Assembly: GCA_964247055.1 (NCBI GenBank)
Contig: OZ176050.1
Coordinates: 13,888,001-13,952,000, forward strand
Direction of reading: 5' to 3'
Source: Paragordius varius
Lineage: Eukaryota; Animalia; Nematomorpha
Length of the DNA stretch: 64,000 bases
Numbering within the stretch: position 1 is the first letter of the stretch; every line of letters starts with the position of its first letter. The notes under the pieces were generated by a model that saw only the letters and a list, made by a program, of their open reading frames with translations, was not told the DNA's origin and did not search any database. The position numbers were made by a program, and so were the translations under genes. Below, piece by piece: positions 36,751 to 63,321 of the stretch.

Positions 36751-37689
36751 TTAACAAAAGTGATTGGGATGCAAGTAAGAGTAAAAGCGGGAACCCTTCG
36801 TGCCATCCATTCGCCAAAGTGCAAAATAATGACCCAAGTCTTGACTTAAACTATCTCCATCTTTTGGTCGATTATATCGTTTTGTGTTTTCTCCTTCATT
36901 GCTCCTTTGATTTTCTGGCATAGTTTTGCCTTCTTCTGCTACCTCCTCCTGCTGTAAACTTTGATTAGAGTTTGAGTTGTCGCCATCATTGAAATCTAAT
37001 ATGGCGTACAGGAAATCAATGTACCTCGTAGCAAGTTTTAGCGTTTGAATCTTACTAAGTTTATCACTTGGTAAAGTTGGTATAATGTGACGCAAAGTAG
37101 CAAATGCTTGATTCAAAGAATGTGTCCTTTGTCGTTCCCTTACGTTTGCTAAAACCCTTTGATTTTGTAACTCTTCAAGGCTAGAGAAAGGGTAAATCAT
37201 TGATGAAGTATTTATGCTGAGGTTCTGATTGGTATGCCTGCTATTTATGTAATAGTTGGTGTCATAATTTACGGAATAATTTTCATAAGGGACAAAAGCC
37301 GTTTTTTCATAATAACTTGGCGTGTATTGATTAAAATGAATCGTATCTTCAGGACAATTTTTTAGTAGATGTTTGCTAGTATTGTAAGGTACTTGGTGGA
37401 TTTCATCTAAATTTTCACGATCGAGTGTTACTGAATCATTACTTATATTAGAAGGATGAAAAGAATTTTTTTGGGTTAATTCCCCATTATGTTTTATAAA
37501 ATTAAAGGTTTGAATGGGTTTATTACTAATACTTTCTGGGCTCAAAGAAGACGTTTCATCTTTATGAGGAATTGAGTTTTGGTTGACTGCTTTATCGTTC
37601 TGATTGGAATTCGATATCCTAGCTTTTTTATTCGGTTGTTTTTTGTGGGTTTTCACTTTTATTCTACCAAGTTTCTTTTCAATAGCCAT
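36751..37689 (-). CDS. twist: Twist bHLH transcription factor, single coding exon, 312 aa
   Basis: [52 protein letters not shown] plus the C-terminal WR motif [12 protein letters not shown]. Confidence 0.95.
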
Positions 37690-38942: not shown

Positions 38943-40133
38943 TTAAAAATAATGATTAATTTCATTATCAGATTGTAATATGTGCTGAAGTTGACCAATA
39001 TAACTTATAGCTTGTTGCAATATCCTGATGCGTGGAACCCGATGTTGCCCTGTCGGTTCAGAAGCCATGTCTTTTGCCTTATATTGGTAATTTGCCATAC
39101 TTTGATCAACGGCTATTCGTTTTTTCTTACGATTATAATGATGATGTTGTGAAAGGAGTGGAATATTTAAGGCATGAGACCCGGTCAAAACTTTGGAGTG
39201 AAGATGGTTCATGGCATTTTTTATACGGAGAGTTCGGACTTTTTCTCTGGCATTACCTGTAAGTCTTCGTTGTATCCAAGCCTCGTCGTCAGTTAAGTTG
39301 GTAGCAGCAGCTTGTCGCCTAAGTTTTTTTGCGTTGTTTGGTAATGCGGACAGGGCTCGTTCAGTTTCTACCTCTGATGATCCATGTAAAGAATTGTTGT
39401 TTTTTACTAAACCCAAGTTATTCATATTTTGGTGGCTTTCATACGAATCAGTCGTGCCGTAATATAATGATGAAGATGATATATCAGTGTCAGAATTAAA
39501 ATTCACTTCTAGTTTAATGTTGGGGACAGTTGGGTAATCATTGACCATGTAACCATTGTATGCGGCACTATGATTAAAAGTCATTTCATTTTGTTGACCT
39601 ACTGTAGACTCAACTTTGACACGGCTGAGATGGTCCATACTTACAGGGTAGTACTGTAAAGAATTTTGATAATCAGTGTCGCATTGCTTTTTCAAATCAC
39701 TTTCAGTGCTAATAAGATCACTTTCCTCCATAAAAAGGTCATCAAAGATGTTTGGCGACAAACACAAAGTATTTTGTTTACGTTCCACATCTGCTGGTCG
39801 TTCTGTTTTCGGTGCAAGTTTGCTTGAGCAAAGTTTATTATTGTGTTGTAGGACACCAAACATTGTTTCATTATCATTGAGTAGTAAAGAAAGGATGGTA
39901 TTGTCATCAACATCATCATCTGTTGCTGCTTGACAAAAATCTGGAAAACTAGAGCTATTATTATTATTAAGATTATTAATTTTTTCATAGTTTGAATCTG
40001 AGTTGGACCACATATCTTTACAAACATAATTCTTGGATTTAGTAAAATTATCATTATAATGGCCAAACTCTAAGGCTTGTTTTTCGTGGAATAGATTGTG
40101 CGGTGATAAATTTTGAACCAGGGTTGTGGACAT
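38943..40133 (-). CDS. Divergent group A bHLH transcription factor with ~50-aa loop insertion, 396 aa
   Basis: Basic/helix 1 RRLTGNAREKVRTLRIKNAMNHLHSKV; helix 2 RVPRIRILQQAISYIGQLQHIL; intronless ORF from an ATG. Confidence 0.8.
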   Translation of the reverse strand: MSTTLVQNLSPHNLFHEKQALEFGHYNDNFTKSKNYVCKDMWSNSDSNYEKINNLNNNNSSSFPDFCQAATDDDVDDNTILSLLLNDNETMFGVLQHNNKLCSSKLAPKTERPADVERKQNTLCLSPNIFDDLFMEESDLISTESDLKKQCDTDYQNSLQYYPVSMDHLSRVKVESTVGQQNEMTFNHSAAYNGYMVNDYPTVPNIKLEVNFNSDTDISSSSLYYGTTDSYESHQNMNNLGLVKNNNSLHGSSEVETERALSALPNNAKKLRRQAAATNLTDDEAWIQRRLTGNAREKVRTLRIKNAMNHLHSKVLTGSHALNIPLLSQHHHYNRKKKRIAVDQSMANYQYKAKDMASEPTGQHRVPRIRILQQAISYIGQLQHILQSDNEINHYF

Positions 40134-51552: not shown

Positions 51553-54500
51553 ATGAAAATGTTGAAATTTTTTCTTACTTTTATATTCATTATTTATGGG
51601 GAAAGAATTAATTCAAACACAGTCGGGAGCGGGATCAACGATCCGAAAATTGTCGATAACAACGGTATCTTATATTTTTTAATTATTAATGGTTTTAATT
51701 GGCATATATACCATTTACAATTACGAATTCACCCTTAAACAATTTGAATTCATCCTCAAACAAAGTATATATTTCATATTAATAATAATGAATTATTTTA
51801 GTTCGAAAACATATAATTTATTTTTTCAAGGTAAATTTTAATTGTTCAAGGGTGAATTTAAATTGTTCAAGGATGATTTGAACTATAAATGGATATTTTT
51901 TATTTTAAATGCAAAGTTTAGTTTAAAACTGAATTTAATAGCCTAACTAGAGTTTTAATACAAATAATTTTTGGTCGATAGATTTATATCTCTATCTAAC
52001 CGATTATAGTAAAATCTCAACTTATACGGACAAAACTAAAAATATAAGGACAAATATTTTTCTCTAAAAGACAACCATACTTTTTAAATCTTGATTTTTT
52101 TAAATTTAACTCATTGTTTTAAACTGCAAAGCACCAAATTGATATGTCTATTGATAAAACAATCAATTATATATTTTATAATGGTAATTACATAATTTAT
52201 ATAAAAAAATTAATGTTTAAAAAGGTATAGTTTTCTTTTGGAAAAAAATATTTGTCCCTATATTTTTACGTTTTGTCCGTATTTATTTCAATTTCTACTG
52301 TATGTTAGGTCCCGATATCATTTTGAAATTTATACGTTTTATTCTTTATAATTTTATTTTTTTCTGTTACTAATCTGTTGTTACCCTTAATTATGATAAA
52401 ATAGTTTTCGTTTTACTAATTAAGTAAGTATGGCGGTGTTAAGATGCCCTCCTCAAAAATTATAATGTTTTGTTGGAAATAAAGAAAAAAAATATTCATT
52501 CATAGAAACGTTAAAAACTTATGGCGAACTTATATGCCCATTCTTTTATTGGTCAGTCATGAGTAATCTATTTTAAAATTAAAAAAAACCATAAATTTGT
52601 TGAACATTTTTATTTGTGTGATATGCTTATTAAAAATTTTATTGCATAGCATCTGAAAGAATTTATATAAATCAACGCAACAACAATTGGACAATTTATT
52701 TATTGGATGCCCCAAAAAATGAAGATAGAATTCCACAGTTAGAAGTTTCTAATAAATTCCACGTAACTCTTATATTTGATATAATTTTATATTGTTTAAA
52801 AGATTTAAGGGCTTTTTCCCACAAGATCAACACACACTTTATGACCTTTTTTGGGGTTATGGTTAGAAAATGTAAATAATTAGCTTTAATAAGCTTTCAG
52901 GTTGCATATAACCTGCAAAAACTATTAATTGATTAGAATCAGCTGTTTAGTTTAGTTGTGTTTTGGAGTTGTTTCAATTTTAGAATCTAGAGCTCAAAAC
53001 TGTAAACAATCATTTTTATCTAATACAAACAATTTTAATTAAATATCTTTCCAAATAGTAATTTATCTATAATATCTGGAATATTATATTACCAACAAAA
53101 ACGTTATGGCGAACAAAAAAGTGCCAACATGGAGGATAAATATTTATTGAGTGAAATTAGTGCGTTTTGTTTGGCATTGTAAATTATTATTTTAACTTCA
53201 AGAGTGTCCTTAAACACTTCAGTTGGTCCTTGAACAATTCAAATTAGTCCTTGAACACTTCCTTAAACACTTTAAGTTGGTTTAATATTTTTAAAGTTTG
53301 ATTAACCATAATTTTTGCTTGTATTTTTTTTATTTTGTTATTTAACCTAATTTTCTATTTATTATATATTTATTCATTTAATGATAATGTTTTTTTTCAA
53401 AATCACTTTTTCAAACTAATTTTTTCCAATTTAACAAAATTATTTTGAATGTTTTCAAGAAATGTATATAATAACCTAGAAAACTAATATATTTTTTAAT
53501 TACGTGTTTCATATAAGATATTATAAAGATATACGGTTTCTCAATGTTTAAAAGTTGATATTGATTTAAAATTTATCGTAAATATTAAAAATAGAGTAAA
53601 AAGATATAATAGATAAATGTAATACGATTTCTTTGATAAAAGTTAAAAACAAAACAAAAAAATCAAAGGACAAACTTGAAATTCAAGAACCAACTTGAAG
53701 TGTTCAAGGACACTCTATAAGTGCAAATGATATATTATTAAATAATAACATATGAACGAAACTTTTAAACCTGTAATCATTAAAATATATGCCTCGTACT
53801 GTAGCAAAAAGTTTGAAATAAAGTATAAAAAACACCTTCCATAAGCCCTTTTTATAATCCTTAGATGATTAATATATAAAACACACATTTTATCGAATGA
53901 AGTGATAATTAGTTTGTCGAATTTTGAAATTGCCATTATTTGTATGTTGTTGTAAATCCTATTTTTTACGCTTTTTAAAAATATATTATTTTATAGTGTA
54001 GTAAATATACAGACGATTTTTTTTCTAAAAGAAAATATATTTCTTTAAACCTAAACTTTTCAAAATTATCTTATCTTTTTGGGTCGCAAAATATATATGG
54101 TTTAAATAAATTATTGCAAAACCTTTATTATATATTTAATATTGTCCTTGTTGTTTATTTTAAAATATTAAGGTGTTTAAAAAATCTATGATTGTATCTT
54201 TATTTTAGTTGAATATAATTACAGTAAAAATTAGAATTATACGGACAAAACGTAAAAATATAAAGGCAAATATTATTTTTTAAAAGACAGCCATACCTTT
54301 TAAACCCTAATTTATTTAAATATCTATCATTGTCTAAAATGACAAAGTGTGAAATAGAGATATATGTAAATATATATATATATATATATATACCATTTAC
54401 AGTTCAAATTCACCCTTAAACAATTCAAATTCACCCTTAAATAATTCAAATTCACCCTTGAACAATTCAAATTCACCCTCAAATAAATAACATGTTTATT

Positions 54501-55890
54501 AAGATTAAAATTACCTATATTTTAATATATTTTTAAAAAATAAAATTTTGTTTTAAATTAAAATAATACCGAAAAAAAAAATTAATTATGCCATAAACAT
54601 ATATTTTATATTAATAATGAGTTATATTAGTTCGAAAACACATAATTTATTTTTAGGGTGAATTTGAATTGTTCGAGGGTGAATTTGAATTGTTCAAGGG
54701 TGAATTTGAATTGTTCAAGGGTGAATTTGAACTGTAAATGGTATATTATTAACACAATTATTTATTACAATTGTAACTAAATAGCTTACTTATATAGGAA
54801 AAATTAAGGTTTTACAACGTATGGTTGTCTTTTAAATAAAAATATTTGTCTTTATATTTTTTGTTTTGTCCCTATAATTTCAATTTTTACTGTAATATCG
54901 ATGAAAAATTCATCGCTTATTATTTATGTTAAAATCTTATCCCGTCTTTGCAAAAAAAGATGAAACACCCACACACTGTTAAATAATCTATATATATATA
55001 TATATATAATTTCTTAAAATTATAGAATTTCAATAATTCTATCTCGGGAATATTTACCTTGAATGAAGTTAAATCCCTTGCTAGGATTTTTATTTATGCA
55101 AACAGTACGTGGCGCGTTTATGGGATTCCTTTTATGATAGGTAGGTGTGCCTTCATACAAAATTACCATTTTTTATTCCTAAATTTTCTTTTTTAAAACA
55201 CTCCTCTTTAAAGTAAAAATTTAAAGAAACAAAATGCAAATTTAAAAATAATAATACAGTAAAAACTGAAATTATACGGACAAAACATATAAATATAAAG
55301 ACAAATATTTATTTCTAAAAGACAACCATATTTTTAATCTGATTTTTTAATTATAGCCTCATTTTTATAAACTTGGAAGTATGAAATACATATGTCTATT
55401 AGTAATACAATCAATTTAATATTTTACAATTGATATTATTTAATTTATATGAAAAAAATAAGATTTAAAGTATGGTTTGTCTTTATATTCTTAAGTTTTG
55501 TCCGTATAATTTCAATTTTTAATGTACTTTTGTTAAAAAAGTTCAAATTTATAATGTGTACTTTGGTTTTGAAAATAACGTTTTTACCTGGATCTTCTAC
55601 TGTAATATATTATTATTGTTAATATAAAAAATAAAAATTACAAACCAGAGTTAAATATGCTTTCACTGTAAAAAGCGATAAATATTTTCTTTCAAAATTA
55701 AAATTTTATATCACAAGCTAATGTGTAAAGTTTACATAACCATGAAATTAATAAAAATAATTACTTTTATTTAATTGTACAGTCCCAGCCTTTGCATGTT
55801 TTTACCTGTCTCTTCTTGTATAAATAATTTATTTTACTGTATATAGATTCTAAAAGCTACAATGGATCAAGTAATAACACATTTACGCAG

Positions 55891-55928
<38 letters not shown>

Positions 55929-58900
55929 GGGTCAAAACTAAGATAATTTTAAAATTACATAATTTTTTCAAACATATACCATTTACAATTCAAATTCACC
56001 CATGAACAATACAAATTTACTCTTGAACAATTCATATTCACCCTAAAAATATATTATGTATTTTCGGGCTAATATGACTCATGAAATGTATCTTTATGAC
56101 TTATATTATTTTATTATTTTCAGTATTATTTTAATTACACGCAATATTTCATTTTTTAAACATAAAAAATATAAGTAATATTTAATTTTAAAAATCAAAT
56201 AATTTATTTTAGGGAGAATTTGAAGTTTAAATGGTTGCTGAATTGTAAACAATTTAAGTGGATGACATAACTGTTTAGATATCATGGGTATTTTGGTATT
56301 ATTCGTAAAAATCTAGAATTTTGTGTAATTTTATTAATCAAGCTTACAACAAAGTTTATTCGTCTGACTTGTCTAAACAAGATATGATTTAACAAAAACT
56401 ATATAAATAAAAACACCAAAAACGATTTTTTTATTGTTTTGTCGCTTTTATGCATATTTAGTATAATTTAATAAGAAACAATTCAAATAAAATTAATCCA
56501 ATGTTGTTTTTTGGGAATATTTTTATCCATTCTTCCCATATATTGACGACTTAACAATATGTTTGTTATGTTGAAAATAATTTTTATCATTAGAAATGAA
56601 GTTGGAGATTAATTTTGAAAACTTACCCCATTTTGATATTGGGGAGGATTATTTCGATAAACCTACTTCCATATCATACGCACAGTCTTATGAATCAGAC
56701 GTAAATCATCCTTACCATGTAATATTTAATGCTATATTATCTTTTATCATTTTGCTATATTTCAATTTTATACTTAGTTTAATGACTAGAAATTTTATTT
56801 GAGTCTAGATTTTAAGGTACCGGAAACGTTGAACAAAATATAATTCTATTTTTGGTGGAAGCATTTGGCTGGCACCACAAAATTTTATTAGCATAATATG
56901 CAACTGCGATTTTTTGAAAAGAGCGAATACCACAAATGGGAATATATTTTTTTTAAATAATTGATTGTTTTAAACTTTAAAGTATAAAATAGTTTTATAT
57001 ATCGCATACTCAATATAATACTATTGAAATTAAATCATTTTTATAAGAGGGATTTAGGTTTCAAAAGTATGAATGCCTCTTGAAAAAATTTTTTTCTTTT
57101 TATTTTGTTTTGTCCTATAATTTCAATTTTTACCGTATTGAATTCTGAAATATCGATTTTGTATGTTGCTGTAAATCTATTTTTTATGCTTTTTAAAAAT
57201 ATTATTTTTTGTAGTAGTAAATATACAGACGAAAAAACATAAAAATTTGATAACAAATATTTTTTTAACCATATTTCTAGGTTTTTAAAAATTATTCCTA
57301 TCTATTTGGGTCGCAAAATACAGTAAAAATTGAATATACGGGCAAAATATGAAAATATAAAGACAGCAAAACATAACCATACTTTTTTAAACCTTATTTT
57401 AACTTATAAAAAACATTTAATTACAATTGTAAAAAACATAATTGATTGTTAGCAATTATTTCTATATTATACAAATAAAGATTGAAAAAATATTTGTCTT
57501 TATATTTCCACGTTTTGTCCCTATAATTTCAATTTTTACTAAATATGGAGTACGTAAAAATTGAATTTATACGGACAAAACGTGAAAATATAAAGACAAA
57601 TATTTTTTCTTATAGACAACCATAATTTTGTAATCTTGATTTTCCAGATAATATACAAAAGTAAATTGGAAACACAATCAATTATAAATTTTACATTGTA
57701 ATTAAATGATGTAAAATACATAATTGATTAAAGTTTAAAAAAAGTATGGTTGTCTTTTGAAAAAATGCTTTTATATTTTACATTTTGGCCGTATAATTTA
57801 AATTACTCTAAATAAGTATTGAAAATTGTATAGTTTAAAATATTAAGGTGTTTAAAAAATCTATGATGAATCTCTCTAAAAAAAGGAATTTTAATTTTGT
57901 GGTTTTGTTTGTATAAATTCAATTTTCGTTGTATATATTTATTTCTATGAAATAATAGACATGGTCTTTGCAAAATCTATATATTTATAAAATTTCTTAA
58001 AATTATAGAATTTCAGTTATTCTGCCTCGGGAAAATTTACCTTAAATGAGATCTTTAATTCATCAATTTCCAGGATTATTCAGGCAATAAGTAATTGGAC
58101 AGTTTATGGGAATCCTCTCATGATAGGTAGGTTTCTTCGTTATAACATACCATTTTTTATTCATAAAATTTCCTTTTATTAAAAAAAATTTTATAAGTAA
58201 AAATTTAAAGAAACAAAATAAAAGTTTGAACGTAATAATACAGTAAAAACTGAAATTATACGGACAAAACATAAAAATATAACGACAAATATTTATTTCT
58301 AAAAGACAACCATACTTTTTTAATCTGATTTTTTAAATAATGTCTCATTGTTTTAAACTTCAAATTATGAAATTGATATGTCTATTGGTTAAAAATCAAT
58401 TATATATTTTACAATTGAAATTATCTAATTTATATGATTAAGCTTAAAAAAGTATAGTTTTCGTTTGAAAAAAATATTTGCCTTTAAGTTTGTCCGTACT
58501 GTATGTACCCAGGGGCGTACCGAGCGTTTGCGGCGCCCGGGGCATAAAACTTTTATGGCGCCCCCGCCCTTTCTCTTTTTGAGAGCCAATAAAAAATTTA
58601 GTAAAAAATTCAAACGTTGCAACTTAAAAACCATATATAAGGACATTTAATTTCAACATGTCCTCAAAGGGGAGATTTTGGGTGATTAGAAATTTTATGC
58701 AGGCTAATATTAGATGTAAAATATTTCGCCATCGATCGTTTTCCGATTGAATATGAGCCTCTATAGCAGAATCAATTCCTCTATTTATCAATCTCCTTTC
58801 TGCCTCTTTCCAAGTAGTAAATGCTTTCCGATGATTGAGGCTATTTTCATGATGGATTAATTTATCTATTTTCCTCCATTTATTAAATCCATGCATAGTT

Positions 58901-61900
58901 ATAAAAGATTATGGAATTAAGTCGATCAAAAAGTTGGCAACAAAAACAATAGGCAGATCTTTGGTGAATATAAAAACCCAGACCTCTAAACTTCAAATCC
59001 TTCTTTTTAACCGACACCTGGAAAAAACCAAGATTGGGGCATTGAACGATGATTTTTTGTTTTAAAAGATGCATTTATTTTAAAATCCATGAGCATGAAT
59101 AGTCATTTCTGTGCGAAGTTGATTGGATATTACGGGAACATTATTATTAGTAAATTTTAAAATGGTGACATCATTAAACTCTGTAATAGCGCTTGGAATT
59201 ACTAGTGGTATATTTGTAGTTTTCTCATCTTTATTTATTGAATTAATAACTAAGGTTTAAGTTTATTTAAGTTATTATTATAAGGGGTACCGTTTTGTTT
59301 GTGTGGCCATACATTTTTTTCAATGTTATGTTCAATATTTCCGTAAATGAGATTTCATATTCATTCGCATTTTATTTGTTTTATTCTCTTCCTGGATTTT
59401 TCGTTTCCCACTTGCGTCACCCTGAGTTTAAGCATTGATATCTGATAAAAATAAAAGTAATTTTAAAAATACAAGGCTTGAATAATAAAAACCTAACTTA
59501 TTAGAGATGAATGATCTTGGGGATTTAATGAATAAAATTGGGTTTTAAAATTGAATATGATTAAAATAAAAATGGCGTCCAAGTAATTTGACATGGAACT
59601 TTTTTTCAAAACGATTTATTTAGATGTTTTGGCTTTTTTATATAATTTTTATTAGGATAGAAGCATAAATTTAAATTGATTGTTTGCTTCAGTAGTTTTT
59701 TGAAAATATTATTTTAAATATAGTCTGGAGTATTTAGATACTTCAATTTGAATCGAAGTGTTCCATCTATTACTGATAGAAATAGAAATGGTTTATTTTG
59801 TATTATTTTTTAATTTTGCTAATACACACATATATTGACTAAATTTTTACCTTTGGGTTTTACTTTAAAATATGTTATACCAAGTATTTTTGAATAAATT
59901 TTTTTAATATTTCGGTTTATTGGTTATAAAAATGCAAACTTTTGCTATGGTTTCAATTCCATTGATAGTATTTAAAGTAATTAATCTAAGCAGGCCAGGG
60001 GTATCCAACTACCCCAATTTATATCGAAGGACTGAAATGAATGTCTTTTATCCAAGTGTTAAGCGAAAAAATAGTTGGCACATGTTGAAGGGAATTCATA
60101 CATGAAAGTTTATTTTTGCACAATGTTTGCTCTTGATCTCATTTCTATAAATACACTGGACAACAAATTTTTCTGCCACTCGGGCTTTTTGAATTTTCTA
60201 ATATTTAGTATTATCTAAATCTGAAATAAAAATTATAACTCGTTGGAAGAATTTTGTATAATTTAATTTTTTGATTATGCGCCCTCTTTATCAAAATTTC
60301 TTTGAAAATATACAAGTAATGCCCATTTGTAATATATCATTCGAAAGAGTAATAAAAACTCTATAAGCATACTTATAGGTATTACATCGACAGTTAATAT
60401 TGGACCCAAAGAGCGACAAACGCGCGAAGCGAGAGCATTTTTTTTAATTATTATATTTTTAAAACTAATGGATGAAAATAGCTCAAACTTTGTTTAGATG
60501 GTGATGAATGTCCAAAAAAGATAACACAAGAAAGTTTTTTTGATATAAACATTTTTTTATTGCTTTTATGTCACTTAAAAATTACCATTACATCAATATT
60601 AATTTATTTTCTTTATAAGGTTGTAATTTCGAAATTTTAAAGATAAAAACAAAGTTTAAGGTATTTTTGATCTTTTATAGCCATTATGTAATAAATTTAC
60701 AGTTATAACTATGCATTTTAGTATCCACTAGGTAAAATATTTATGATAATAATAATTTCATTAAAAAATCAAACCAAAAGCTTTTTTAAACATTTTTTTT
60801 AAATTAAATACTTATATAACCCTAATTATATTAAAATAATTTATATGATTTTCAAATTAGTTTGTCTGTGAAAATTCTTGATTTATTCAGGGATTGAAAA
60901 TTTCGACCATTTAAATCCAAATAACTTTTACATCCGATTGATTTAAATGACTTACTACCATTTAAAAGATGCAGTTTTTTGCGCTCTTTCGAATGATATA
61001 AAATACATGCTTCCTAAATAAAACTTTTAATTTTCGAAATTTCGAGTTTAATGTTAAAGCGGGGCCAAAAAATATCGATAAACTCTAATATAAAAAGATT
61101 CTTGCATGCTAGACCGATTTCCTTTTCAGATATACTAATTATGTACTTTAATGAAATAAATTTTAAATTTACAAGAGTGGCAGTTAAAAAAAATTAAAAT
61201 TTATTGTCTAGTGTTATTATATTATTTTAGGGATTATTAATTGCTGAAAAATCTTACCTGAAAGTTATTATTATTATTTTTGAATAATTTATATTTTATT
61301 TAAAATGTCCATTTAGGCGCCCCTAAATAACGGCGCCCGGGGCATGATGCACCCCCTTGCCCCCCCATCGGTACGCCACTGTATGTACCTTTTTTGAAAA
61401 AATACAAATAAATAATGTGTACTTTTAGGGTTTATAACGTTTATACCTGGATCTTTTACTAGAATATATTATTGTAAATGCAAAAATAGAAAACAAACCA
61501 CAGTTAAAAGGCTTTCACTGTTAAAAGCGATAAAATATTGTCTCTCAAAATTAAATTTTATATCACAAGCTAATGTATAAAGTTTACATAACCATGAATT
61601 TAATTAAAATAATTACTGATTTCAAATGTGGCAGCCTTTGGATGTTTTTGCCTGTCTTGTCTTCTTGAATACAATTTATTTTATTATATATAGATTCTAG
61701 CTACAATGAATCAATCAAAACTATCACATATGAGCGACGCAGTAAATATATATATATATATATACATTATGGAAATAAAATATTTTTTAAAATTACATAA
61801 ATTTTTTAAACATATACTATTTACATTTCCATTTCACCCTTGACACAAATTAACTCTTGAACAATTCACCTATTATGTATTTTCGGGCTAATTTAACTCA

Positions 61901-62781
61901 TTATCCATATGAACTGTATCTGTATGACTTATTTTATTATTATTTCAGTAATATTTTAATTACAAGCATTATTTTATTCTTATAAAAATAAAAAAATATA
62001 TAGGTAACATTTAATCTTATAAAATCTTATAATTTATTTTAGGGTGAATTTGAATTGTACAAGAGTGAATATGAATTGTCAAGGGTGAATTTAAAGTTTA
62101 AATGGTATATTAGGTTGATTTGCTAAATTATATACAGTTTAAGTGGATCAAATAACTGTTTTAAATATCATGGGTTGGTATAATTATATTTTTCCGTAAA
62201 TTTAAAATGTTGTGTAATTTTTCACAAAAAAACGTATTAAAATTTTATTCGTCTGACTTGTCAAAAAAAGATGATTTACAGAAATTATAAAAAAATATCA
62301 AATCAATTTTCTGAATTGTTTTGGATCCGCTTTTATACAGATTTTAAATACTTTAATAAAAAACAATTCAAATAAAATTGTTCCAACTTTGTTGTTTGAG
62401 ATTTTTATTCATTCATTAAAAACTTCCCATACATTGATGACTTAACACTATGTTTGTTATGTTGAAAATTATTTTTATGATTAGAATTGAAGTTGAAGAT
62501 TTATTTTCGAAACTTGACCCATTTTAATATTTGGGGAGACAATATTGATTACCCCACTTCCATATTATACACACAGCATTCTCAATCAGAATTAGTTCAT
62601 CTATACCATGTAATATTAATATTATTTTTTATTAGTTTGCTATATTTCAATATTATACTTTATTTAAATGACTAAAATTGTTTAACAAAATGTATTCTTT
62701 TTTAGAAGCGTTTGGCTAAGGCCACAAAATTTTTTAAGCCTAATATGCTCCTGCGATTTTCGAAGAGCAATTACCACAAAA
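51553..62781 (+). CDS. Putative multi-exon secreted protein (or tandem gene pair) with beta-gamma-crystallin-like repeats
   Basis: Signal-peptide exon 51553-51664. Candidate exons 52485-52562, 52650-52762, 52810-52861, ~53059-53160, 54012-54098, 55026-55140, 55847-~55871, 56594-56718, 57281-57322, 58009-58126, 61429-61473, 61694-61741, 62485-62609, 62706-62781. The chain 57281-62609 splices in frame. Several other junctions are unresolved. Confidence 0.6.
53201..53716. mobile_element. MITE with AGAGTGTCCTT termini and 21-bp subterminal units related to the TATA|CCATTT family
   Basis: AGAGTGTCCTTAAACACTTCAGTTGG at the left end and CCAACTTGAAGTGTTCAAGGACACTCT at the right; internal CCTTGAACAATTCAAATT unit. 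No clean TSD. Confidence 0.7.
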
Positions 62782-62790
62782 GTGAAAATA
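53950..62790 (+). repeat. Tandem segmental duplication: copy A ~53950-56950, copy B ~57170-62790 (expanded by insertions)
   Basis: Collinear homologous blocks, e.g. 54000/57220, 55020/58005, 55540/61400, 55780/61630, 56300/62170, 56590/62480, 56860/62705; shared MITEs at equivalent positions (55257/58241, 55975/61813). Confidence 0.9.
58510..61381 (-). mobile_element. Non-autonomous hAT transposon (2872 bp) with truncated ZMYM1/TTF-zinc-finger-type transposase pseudogene
   Basis: TIR CAGGGGCGTACCG / CAGTGGCGTACCG; perfect 8-bp TSD TATGTACC (58502-58509, 61382-61389). Frameshifted fragments at ~58624-59440: SAYCFCCQLF, GFNKWRK...HENSLNH, WRNILHLILACIKFLITQNLPF. Catalytic core absent. Confidence 0.9.
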
Positions 62791-63321
62791 TTTTTTAGAA
62801 TAATTCGTAAAACCCAAAACCAAAAGCATTATAAGATACCTATTTTTCTATCACAAAAAATATATATTTTATCAGGATATTTTATATATACATATAAATT
62901 ATTTTATACTTGGATACAACACATTTATTTGAATCCTCCGATTAAAATTGAGGTCTTTGGGGACCCCAGGCCTATTTAAAAATAAAATAATCCTAAAAAT
63001 ATGGAACAAATTGAAACCATTGCAAAGTTTGCATTTATAAAACGCTAAACGCCGAAATATATAAAATATTTACAAAAACTTGATATTACTTATTTTATGG
63101 ATTAACCTCAAGGGAAAAATTGAGTCAACATGACATGTGTGCATCAGCTAAATATAAAAATAATGCAGAATAAACGACTTTTTTTGTTTATATCCATGTT
63201 TGATTATACTTAAATAAAGAATTAGCTTTAATTTTAGCGTTAGAAACAAATAAACACGATTTTTTGCAAAAATGTTGTAAAATATGATCCTAAATCTTTT
63301 TTTCAAACTAAATTTTATTTG

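Follow-up and report, generated by a model that had tools for sequence, protein, structure and literature searches.

Beta-gamma-crystallins are built from paired Greek-key motifs, each carrying the signature Y/F-x4-Y/F-x-G with a structural Ser ~34 residues further on, and the calcium site of the microbial and invertebrate members reads N/D-N/D-x-x-S/T-S. To our knowledge, no beta-gamma-crystallin-like protein has been described in the phylum of the organism studied here. Another described system with which the present locus can be compared is that of the micro-exon genes (MEGs) of Schistosoma: their first exon encodes a signal peptide, their internal exons are short and symmetric with long introns between them, and their products are secreted, lineage-specific, without homologues elsewhere, and subject to accelerated or neutral-like evolution (bioRxiv 10.1101/2023.06.21.545858; PMC4350168).

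We analyzed a 64-kb stretch of DNA (hereafter the window; 64,000 nt in full), in which an earlier note had placed, at 51553-62781, a hidden micro-exon locus encoding a secreted beta-gamma-crystallin-like repeat protein. The surroundings of this interval are gene-poor and strongly AT-rich (background GC 0.24). The duplicate copy claimed for the locus is present: self-BLAST revealed a tandem repeat in which blocks 53919-54093, 54992-55452, and 55522-56962 of copy A match copy B at 73-82%, copy B being the longer because of transposon insertions in it. No further copies of the A/B exons were detected downstream of the window or elsewhere in the 110-Mb genome, giving two copies in total. The features are listed below, with a slash marking an exon border.

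51553-51664, + strand: candidate first exon; ATG, signal-peptide-like MKMLKFFLTFIFIIYG, donor G/GTATCT, phase 1
52650-52762, + strand: candidate second exon, SERIYINQRNNNWTIY...; acceptor GCATAG/, phase 1 to 0, donor CAC/GTAACT
53919-56962, no strand assigned: copy A of the tandem duplication, from self-BLAST
55026-55140, + strand: A exon 2, NFNNSISGIFTLNEVKSLARIFIYANSTWRVYGIPFMI-G; AG and GTAGGT conserved
56594-56802, + strand: A exon 5; frame open to TGA, T-rich hydrophobic tail
57140-62805, no strand assigned: copy B of the tandem duplication, from self-BLAST and the A/B alignment
57281-57322, + strand: B exon 1 (B1), VFKNYSYLFGSQNT; AG...GT borders, 42 nt, GC 0.26, doubtful
57320-57807, no strand assigned: MITE(s) with ends ACAGTAAAAATTGAATATACGG..., absent from copy A
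58009-58126, + strand: B exon 2 (B2), NFSYSASGKFTLNEIFNSSISRIIQAISNWTVYGNPLMI-G; AG...GT, phase 0 to 1, 118 nt, bears the crystallin-like pattern
58510-61381, no strand assigned: hAT-like DNA transposon, 2872 bp, with TIRs and the 8-bp target-site duplication TATGTACC
61429-61473, + strand: B exon 3 (B3), FITFIPGSFTRIYY; 45 nt, symmetric phase 1, GC 0.26, doubtful
61694-61741, + strand: B exon 4 (B4), SSYNESIKTITYERR; 48 nt, symmetric phase 1, uncertain
62485-62675, + strand: B exon 5 (B5), KLKLKIYFRNLTHFNIWGDNIDYPTSILYTQHSQSELVHLYH plus hydrophobic tail and stop TAA; AG-bounded, at least 125 nt

The MITE(s) were inserted after the A/B duplication. The hAT-like element sits in putative intron 2 of copy B, belongs to a family dispersed in the genome (at least 354 first-look candidates), and gives a weak match to zf-C17orf113. 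The word CAGCTG occurs 3 times in the 64-kb window, against 2.9 expected.

Each of the peptides quoted in the earlier note was found at its position and in its frame, every B segment (B1 to B5) has AG...GT borders, and the B phases run 0-0-1-1-1 as described there. The chain can be read in frame from the ATG at 51553 as far as the stop at 62675, and the exon chains tested were likewise open with one terminal stop, where length and stop count are all that was computed. In such AT-rich DNA, in-frame GT-AG chains are easily built. The duplication, the frames, the splice dinucleotides, and the phases are thus observed, whereas transcription, splicing, secretion, and any function of the predicted gene are inferred. 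The proposal that the segments are duplicated in copy A holds for exons 2 and 5, which are present there as exons, whereas exons 1 and 3 lack an acceptor in A and exon 4 is frameshifted.

Exons 2 and 5 are the two longest open frames within the duplication, and they are the only two of the five B exons that have a frame, AG acceptor, GT donor, and compatible phases in both A and B. In A and B alike, phase 1 is found at the end of exon 2 and at the start of exon 5, so the two can be joined in frame whether exons 3 and 4 are included or skipped. The 25 nt ahead of the exon 2 acceptor are identical in A and B, as is the ATGATAGGTAGGT donor, and the exon itself shows 63% amino-acid identity between copies; its centre in copy B (58050-58102) is the most diverged 50-nt window in the whole A/B alignment (48%). 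For exon 5, identity is 52-58%, and its first 125 nt contain zero A/B indels, where the intron rate predicts ~2-3; the tail has noncoding-like codons, and in copy A an alternative donor (CAT/GTAATA) follows 56718. The dN/dS comparison of A and B exons that the earlier note had proposed yielded 0.59 for exon 2 and 0.9-1.0 for exon 5 (0.91, 1.01).

The least credible exons are B1, B3, and B4, and B1 is probably spurious. More specifically, (i) the last codon of B1 (ACA) and its donor (GTAAAA) lie within the MITE that starts at ~57320 and is absent from A, and copy A reads CTAAAC where B reads CTAGGT, i.e., it has no AG acceptor for exon 1; (ii) at exon 3, copy A has TTTGGTTTTG versus TTTTAGGG in B, again without an AG acceptor, and the codon score of B3 is below that of 99.5% of real coding segments of equal length; and (iii) at exon 4, the acceptor is kept in A and a 5-nt indel throws A out of frame, while an alternative frame from the same AG acceptor is open in A and B alike. 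Because the frame survives their skipping, all three are optional at best.

The term micro-exon suits B1, B3, and B4 alone (42-48 nt). The conserved exons are larger (118 nt for exon 2, at least 125 nt for exon 5) and asymmetric, exon 2 running from phase 0 to phase 1 and exon 5 from phase 1 to the end, and so are not micro-exons. Like the exons of Schistosoma MEGs, the three short segments (42, 45, and 48 nt) are multiples of 3 and skippable in frame. In contrast to MEGs, for which the criterion is mostly symmetric exons of ≤81 nt whose lengths are multiples of 3, most residues here lie in B2 and B5, and the three micro-exons are precisely those not conserved in copy A. The locus further differs from MEGs in comprising two tandem copies and no dispersed family, in having no sequence similarity to them, and in belonging to an animal that is not a flatworm.

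The signal-peptide exon reported upstream is borne out to the extent that an ATG-started, signal-peptide-like frame is present at 51553, with a TATA-like box, TATAAATA, ~60 nt upstream of the ATG. The signal-peptide-like stretch is followed by 22 codons richer in GC/CpG; the exon is single copy genome-wide, its GC is 0.32 versus a background of 0.24, and its codon score resembles that of noncoding DNA. Signal-peptide-like starts make up ~3% of ATG-open frames in the genome, or ~6-7 per 64 kb, and direct reading of the sequence showed that neither unit A nor unit B has, upstream of exon 2, an ATG opening a signal-peptide frame. The segment at 52650-52762 matches the phase of the first exon (phase 1), has no Pfam match, and is an unproven candidate. 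The motifs at 52650 and 53070, described earlier as related to those of the repeat, have no significant similarity to the A/B exons, and tblastn returned self matches only.

Exon indels between A and B were 3; 3; 3, 3, 5; none; and 6, which agrees with the earlier observation that they are mostly 0 or 3 nt: multiples of 3 account for 5 of 6 in the exons versus 9 of 29 in the flanks (Fisher p 0.03). A/B differences were distributed over codon positions as 9/8/10 and 15/7/8, and no sign of purifying selection was found in the A/B exon comparison, where a third-position excess is absent. Divergence was 0.24-0.28 in exons versus 0.18 in introns, and remained ~1.3-fold higher in exons after base-composition correction (p ~0.03). 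We do not read positive selection into this excess, since the higher GC explains most of the difference and one intronic window is nearly as diverged. By these measures the two copies look to differ like neutral DNA. In neutral simulations given the observed substitutions, the frame stayed open in 16% of cases for exon 2 and in 4-9% for exon 5. Among B open frames of at least 35 codons, 3 of 20 are still open in A, where ~1 is expected (Poisson p ~0.08), and one of these three is a non-candidate of 49 codons that runs through a TA microsatellite. The GC peaks of the unique DNA (0.31-0.35 versus 0.24) coincide with exons 2 and 5 and with the first exon, as they do with real exons in the window. 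When codon-usage scores are added up over the nine candidate exons, the sum (4.5) exceeds that of open noncoding frames by ~1.5 SD and falls short of that of real coding segments by ~2.9 SD. N-x-S/T sites number 6 in 123 residues, against 0.9 expected.

A search of 1.84 billion representative proteins found no relative apart from one low-complexity repeat protein (P0001, 219 aa, tandem repeats); its match to B exon 5 (E 2e-6) was judged a chance one, the score coming from three identical repeats. For B exon 2, no relative was found in Pfam, PDB, Atlas, or the protein library, and a word-index search was blank too. Exact look-up of four ORFs of the window in the protein collection returned none. 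A Twist control found a best match of 48% (Gordionus, bdelloid rotifers), indicating that neither the species nor its close kin is represented in the collection, and blank protein searches are thus uninformative on annotation or expression. A PDB profile match of exon 5 to the start of the collagen IV NC1 was likewise attributed to chance, as the collagen IV genes of this genome share 12 of 34 residues with it and no DNA similarity.

The beta-gamma-crystallin identity proposed earlier found no support in Pfam, PDB profiles, or exon-wise AlphaFold2, and its calcium motif is incomplete. Pfam Crystall (hmmscan, E ≤10) had no match to the first exon or to the A and B versions of exons 2 and 5, in a test that covered single exons and in which B3 and B4 fall below the 20-residue minimum of the search. 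PF00030 gave 0 matches in the six-frame translation of the whole genome at E ≤1, whereas two control genomes gave matches, and PDB profile searches with the exons returned no crystallin. Exon-wise AlphaFold2 predicted a low-confidence helix over residues 12-33 of exon 2 (pLDDT 61) and no secondary structure for exon 5 (pLDDT 46); a half-domain need not fold on its own. In the supposed FNSSIS calcium motif, N-S-S-I-S of copy B holds one N/D where two are needed, and copy A has V-K-S-L-A (V-KSLA). Compared by eye, Y-G-N-P-L-M-I-G of B exon 2 has Met at the second aromatic position, Arg occupies the place of the structural Ser, and no first-motif Greek-key signature is present in B1 or at the start of B2.

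B exon 2 does match 9 of the 16 fixed positions of FND.ISSI.V.SG.W..Y..PNF.G, a pattern drawn up with the sequence already in view. No equal match occurs elsewhere in 274 kb of six-frame translation: B exon 2 is the sole segment with at least 7 matches in the 64-kb stretch, and 210 kb of other loci gave a single 7. The W, Y, P, and G of the pattern are kept in copy A. We take the spacing W-3-Y-3-P-4-G, as well as the distance to the later YNESIKT, to fit gamma-/beta-crystallin motifs. Compared with Crystall (PF00030), B exon 2 is alike in F-N-x-x-I-S and W-x-x-Y-x-x-P-x-x-x-G, B exons 3 and 4, if joined, are alike in P-G-x-F and Y-N-E-S-I-K-T, and the module of 80-130 residues approximates one to one and a half beta-gamma-crystallin domains. 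Unlike Crystall, it has no profile match, structural Ser, second aromatic, or complete calcium motif, nothing in the exon-wise models points to strands, and the crystallin-like resemblance of B exon 2 is not conserved in its paralogue in A.

We consider it most likely that exons 2 and 5 are true coding exons, to which the signal-peptide-like first exon (51553) is probably spliced. The gene would be lineage-specific and fast-evolving and would encode a small secreted protein that is N-glycosylated and may carry a hydrophobic anchor at its C-terminus. Its exon module was tandem-duplicated, and A and B would then have changed approximately neutrally, with stops and frameshifts kept out of exons 2 and 5. 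That such a gene is real we hold tentatively, as nearly an even call. What is left of the earlier proposal, a hidden small-exon gene for a secreted protein, is plausible, with the conservation of exons 2 and 5 in its favor and the neutral-looking A/B divergence and lack of conservation of the other exons against it. It is also quite possible, albeit somewhat doubtful, that there is no gene. The locus would then be noncoding AT-rich DNA with a GPCR gene on one side and a gene desert on the other, and the exons would be the longest frames left open by chance; frames in GC-richer patches with rarer stops would have been chained via abundant AG and GT, in a setting of a ~3-kb duplication, MITEs, and hAT. 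Substitutions between A and B that are neutral and without codon-position bias, codon usage closer to noncoding DNA, exons 1, 3, and 4 without an acceptor or frame-broken in A, and one donor inside a MITE are all consistent with the absence of a gene, as are the non-candidate 49-codon frame, just as "conserved" between A and B, the frequency of signal-peptide-like starts, the failure of every search to find a homologue or domain, and the 10 kb downstream of the window, in which no open frame exceeds 83 aa. Less easily explained by chance are the in-frame indel bias (p ~0.02-0.03), the N-x-S/T excess, the 9/16 Greek-key pattern match found once in 274 kb, and the joint retention in A and B of both long frames together with splice dinucleotides and matching phases. 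The exons resemble orphan genes or chance AT-rich frames in having no homologue, a dN/dS of ~1, noncoding-like codons, short length, and a transposon-filled gene desert around them, and depart from the usual chance frames in that, for two of the frames, the splice sites and phase have survived a duplication at K ~0.2 and the indels are in frame, which is somewhat more than such frames usually show.

Alternatively, exons 2 and 5, possibly together with the first exon, could be relics of a duplicated secreted-protein gene of which both copies are decaying neutrally, too young for stops to have arisen in two GC-richer exons. This would reconcile GC peaks, splice sites, and phases with neutral divergence and with the loss of exons 1, 3, and 4 in A, and transposon insertions have accumulated in the introns; nevertheless, we regard it as unlikely, given that decay at K ~0.2 should usually break one or more of the four exon copies (open chance 0.16 and 0.04-0.09 per pair before indels) and that the genome holds no intact paralogue elsewhere. 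The model of the earlier note, in which the spliced product is a secreted multi-domain beta-gamma-crystallin (Greek-key) protein with calcium sites, is very improbable: the 9/16 match of B exon 2 and the W, Y, P, and G kept in A are set against blank Pfam, genome-wide PF00030, and PDB profile searches, helix or disorder in the exon-wise AlphaFold2 models, a calcium site unmet in B and absent in A, and Arg for Ser and Met for the second aromatic. Moreover, the pattern was chosen post hoc, after reading the sequence, and the match depends on including exons 3 and 4, neither of which is an exon in copy A. We give hardly any credence to a real gene whose spliced product would fold into a highly diverged Greek-key module and would escape ORF- and profile-based annotation through small exons, neutral-rate turnover, transposon-laden introns, and one MITE-supplied donor.

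The finding as it stands is an ordinary one, and unproven. A crystallin motif noticed by eye failed profile tests, and at ~24% GC, in-frame GT-AG chains, signal-peptide-like starts, and "conserved" duplicate frames arise readily, which calls for caution. If the core exons are real, they would represent a further fast-evolving, taxonomically restricted gene for a secreted protein, in a parasitic animal with a barely annotated genome; genes of this kind, which ORF-based pipelines miss, are the usual candidates for host interaction.

Self-comparison of the window bore out the tandem repeat described in the earlier note, with copy A at 53919-56962 and copy B at 57140-62805, the latter having outgrown the former through a hAT-like transposon and extra MITEs. 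The following elements were located:

58510-61381, hAT-like DNA transposon of 2872 bp with terminal inverted repeats and an 8-bp target duplication, in copy B only
~8.4, 23.6, 52.0-52.3, 54.2-54.9, 55.25-55.53, 57.32-57.81 and 58.24-58.50 kb, MITEs of an abundant family whose ends resemble ACAGTAAAAAYTGAAWTWATACGGRCAAAA

The hAT-like element is bordered by its target duplication, TATGTACC (58502-58509 and 61382-61389), has GC-rich inverted ends (CAGGGGCGTACCGA... and ...TCGGTACGCCACTG), and belongs to a family with at least 354 first-look candidates genome-wide, the nearest copies of which are 91-92% identical. Because the MITE end reads ...CA/GTAAAA (slash, junction), every MITE insertion supplies a donor-like site, and the donor of the proposed exon at 57281 is one such site.

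All peptides quoted in the earlier note were found at their positions and in their frames. Its five candidate exons in copy B (B1-B5, hereafter exons 1-5), each preceded by AG, are:

57281-57322, plus strand, B1
58009-58126, plus strand, B2
61429-61473, plus strand, B3
61694-61741, plus strand, B4
62485-62675, plus strand, B5

B1-B4 are followed by GT in contexts (GTAAAA, GTAGGT, GTAAAT) that resemble the donors of the window's real genes, B5 being exempt, and the proposed phases, 0-0-1-1-1, were reproduced. Chains leading from the ATG at 51553 via a candidate exon at 52650-52762 into copy A, copy B or both are multiples of 3 in length and contain a single stop, at the end, these being the two properties scored in this check. 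Exons 2 and 5 occur in exactly two copies each genome-wide, the first candidate exon (51553-51664, plus strand) in one, and a search for further copies downstream of the window found none.

We compared the fate of each exon in copy A. The counterparts of exon 2 (55026-55140) and exon 5 (56594-56802) there retain frame, AG and GT, and exon 2 can be spliced to exon 5 without loss of frame whether or not exons 3 and 4 are included, since both pairs are phase-compatible. Exon 1 lacks its acceptor in A, and the last codon and donor of B1 sit inside a MITE that is not present there; exon 1 is therefore younger than the duplication, or spurious. Exon 3 likewise lacks its acceptor in A, and exon 4 has its acceptor, with the frame broken by a 5-nt indel. 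Such a mixture of kept and lost parts might also be read as a dead gene, which we consider unlikely. The centre of exon 2 (58050-58102 versus 55067-55116) is the most diverged 50-nt window between A and B (48%), its flanks being 80-100% identical; 44% is reached in an intronic window (62195-62244), so this divergence is not unique. A GC-richer patch (0.38-0.40) directly follows exon 5 in both A (56797-56888) and B (62689-62795); no frame in it is common to both copies, and it could be a 3' UTR or a regulatory element.

Several observations count in favor of coding. The frame-friendly exon indels reported earlier held up, with multiples of 3 in 5 of 6 exon indels versus 9 of 29 in the flanks, and exon 5 shows zero indels in 125 nt between A and B. 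Under neutral simulation, the frame survives in 16% of runs for exon 2 and in 4-9% for exon 5, and the splice dinucleotides of both are intact in A and B. In addition, the first candidate exon and exons 2 and 5 are the GC peaks of the unique DNA, and N-x-S/T sites stand at sixfold expectation, an excess that is partly compositional. Other observations count against coding and in favor of chance frames within duplicated noncoding DNA, a reading to which we accord a sizeable probability, appreciably short of even. More specifically, A/B dN/dS values of 0.59 (exon 2) and 0.91-1.01 (exon 5) came with no excess of differences at third positions; A/B divergence was 0.24-0.28 in exons versus a uniform 0.18 in introns, a ratio of ~1.3 once the higher mutability of G/C sites is allowed for; and signal-peptide-like ATG frames are common here. 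By a codon-usage log-odds score whose training set was the long ORFs in 250 kb of the same genome, the nine candidate exons jointly exceed open noncoding frames by ~1.5 SD and fall short of real coding segments by ~2.9 SD. Among the open frames of at least 35 codons in aligned B blocks, 3 of 20 are still open in A (~1 expected, p ~0.08), and one of these three is not a candidate exon:

61694-61840 (plus strand, frame 0) versus 55847-56002, 49-codon frame through a TA microsatellite (IYIYIYI), open in A and B

This frame is clearly noncoding and serves as a yardstick of how easily a frame is "conserved" here.

The earlier note had further inferred a beta-gamma-crystallin-like product. As a string match, the likeness of B exon 2 to its pattern is real: 9 of 16 fixed positions agree, with at most 7 in all other stop-free windows of a six-frame translation of 274 kb, and the spacing agrees with that of gamma- and beta-crystallin motifs. 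In the proposed calcium motif, B has no second N/D, and copy A carries another sequence at that place. The crystallin motif's structural Ser and its second aromatic are absent, and the match further requires exons 3 and 4, neither of which is an exon in A. Homology and fold searches took single exons as queries, one by one. Pfam Crystall (PF00030) gave no match at E up to 10 to exon 2 (A, B), exon 5 (A, B) or the first exon, and none at E up to 1 across the six-frame genome, two control genomes being positive. Likewise, PDB profile searches found no crystallin, and the Atlas and word-index search returned no match. For exon 2 alone, AlphaFold2 predicted a helix of low confidence at the very place that calls for strands, and for exon 5 alone it predicted disorder; half-domains are a weak test, and these folds could not decide the matter. 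A crystallin fold appears very improbable. The earlier observation is confirmed in part; of its interpretation, the repeat is supported, a hidden gene for a secreted protein may be present, and the crystallin identity found no support in the independent tests.

Two other likenesses were rejected. Searching 1.84 billion proteins with exon 5 gave a single match, a tandem-repeat protein with a score inflated by its repeats. Within B exon 5, IDYPTSILYTQHSQSELV (62547-62600) resembles the collagen IV NC1 start over 18 residues (PDB 8txn, LDYLTGILITRHSQSETV), which we judged to be chance; the genome's own collagen IV genes (on C2 and C6) match the exon 5 segment weakly, with no DNA similarity to it.

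The genome is 110 Mb in 44 contigs and very AT-rich, and the last recognisable gene of the window lies at ~50 kb. Up to that point the minus strand carries one cadherin-domain gene, one rhodopsin-type GPCR and two bHLH genes separated by 1.3 kb:

36751-37689, minus strand, Twist-like bHLH gene
38943-40133, minus strand, second bHLH gene

Since the closest relatives of the Twist-like gene in protein collections, from Gordionus and bdelloid rotifers, reach at best 48% identity, neither this species nor any close kin of it is represented there. Between 50 kb and at least 74 kb the DNA is gene-poor (GC 0.21-0.28), and its sole frame exceeding 90 amino acids is a 99-codon frame running into the first candidate exon. 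The word CAGCTG occurs 3 times in the window (2.9 expected), once at 52940, between candidate exons. Judged from sequence, this DNA may harbor a real lineage-specific, fast-evolving gene for a secreted protein, with exons 2 and 5 as its candidate core, a reading to which we give close to an even chance.
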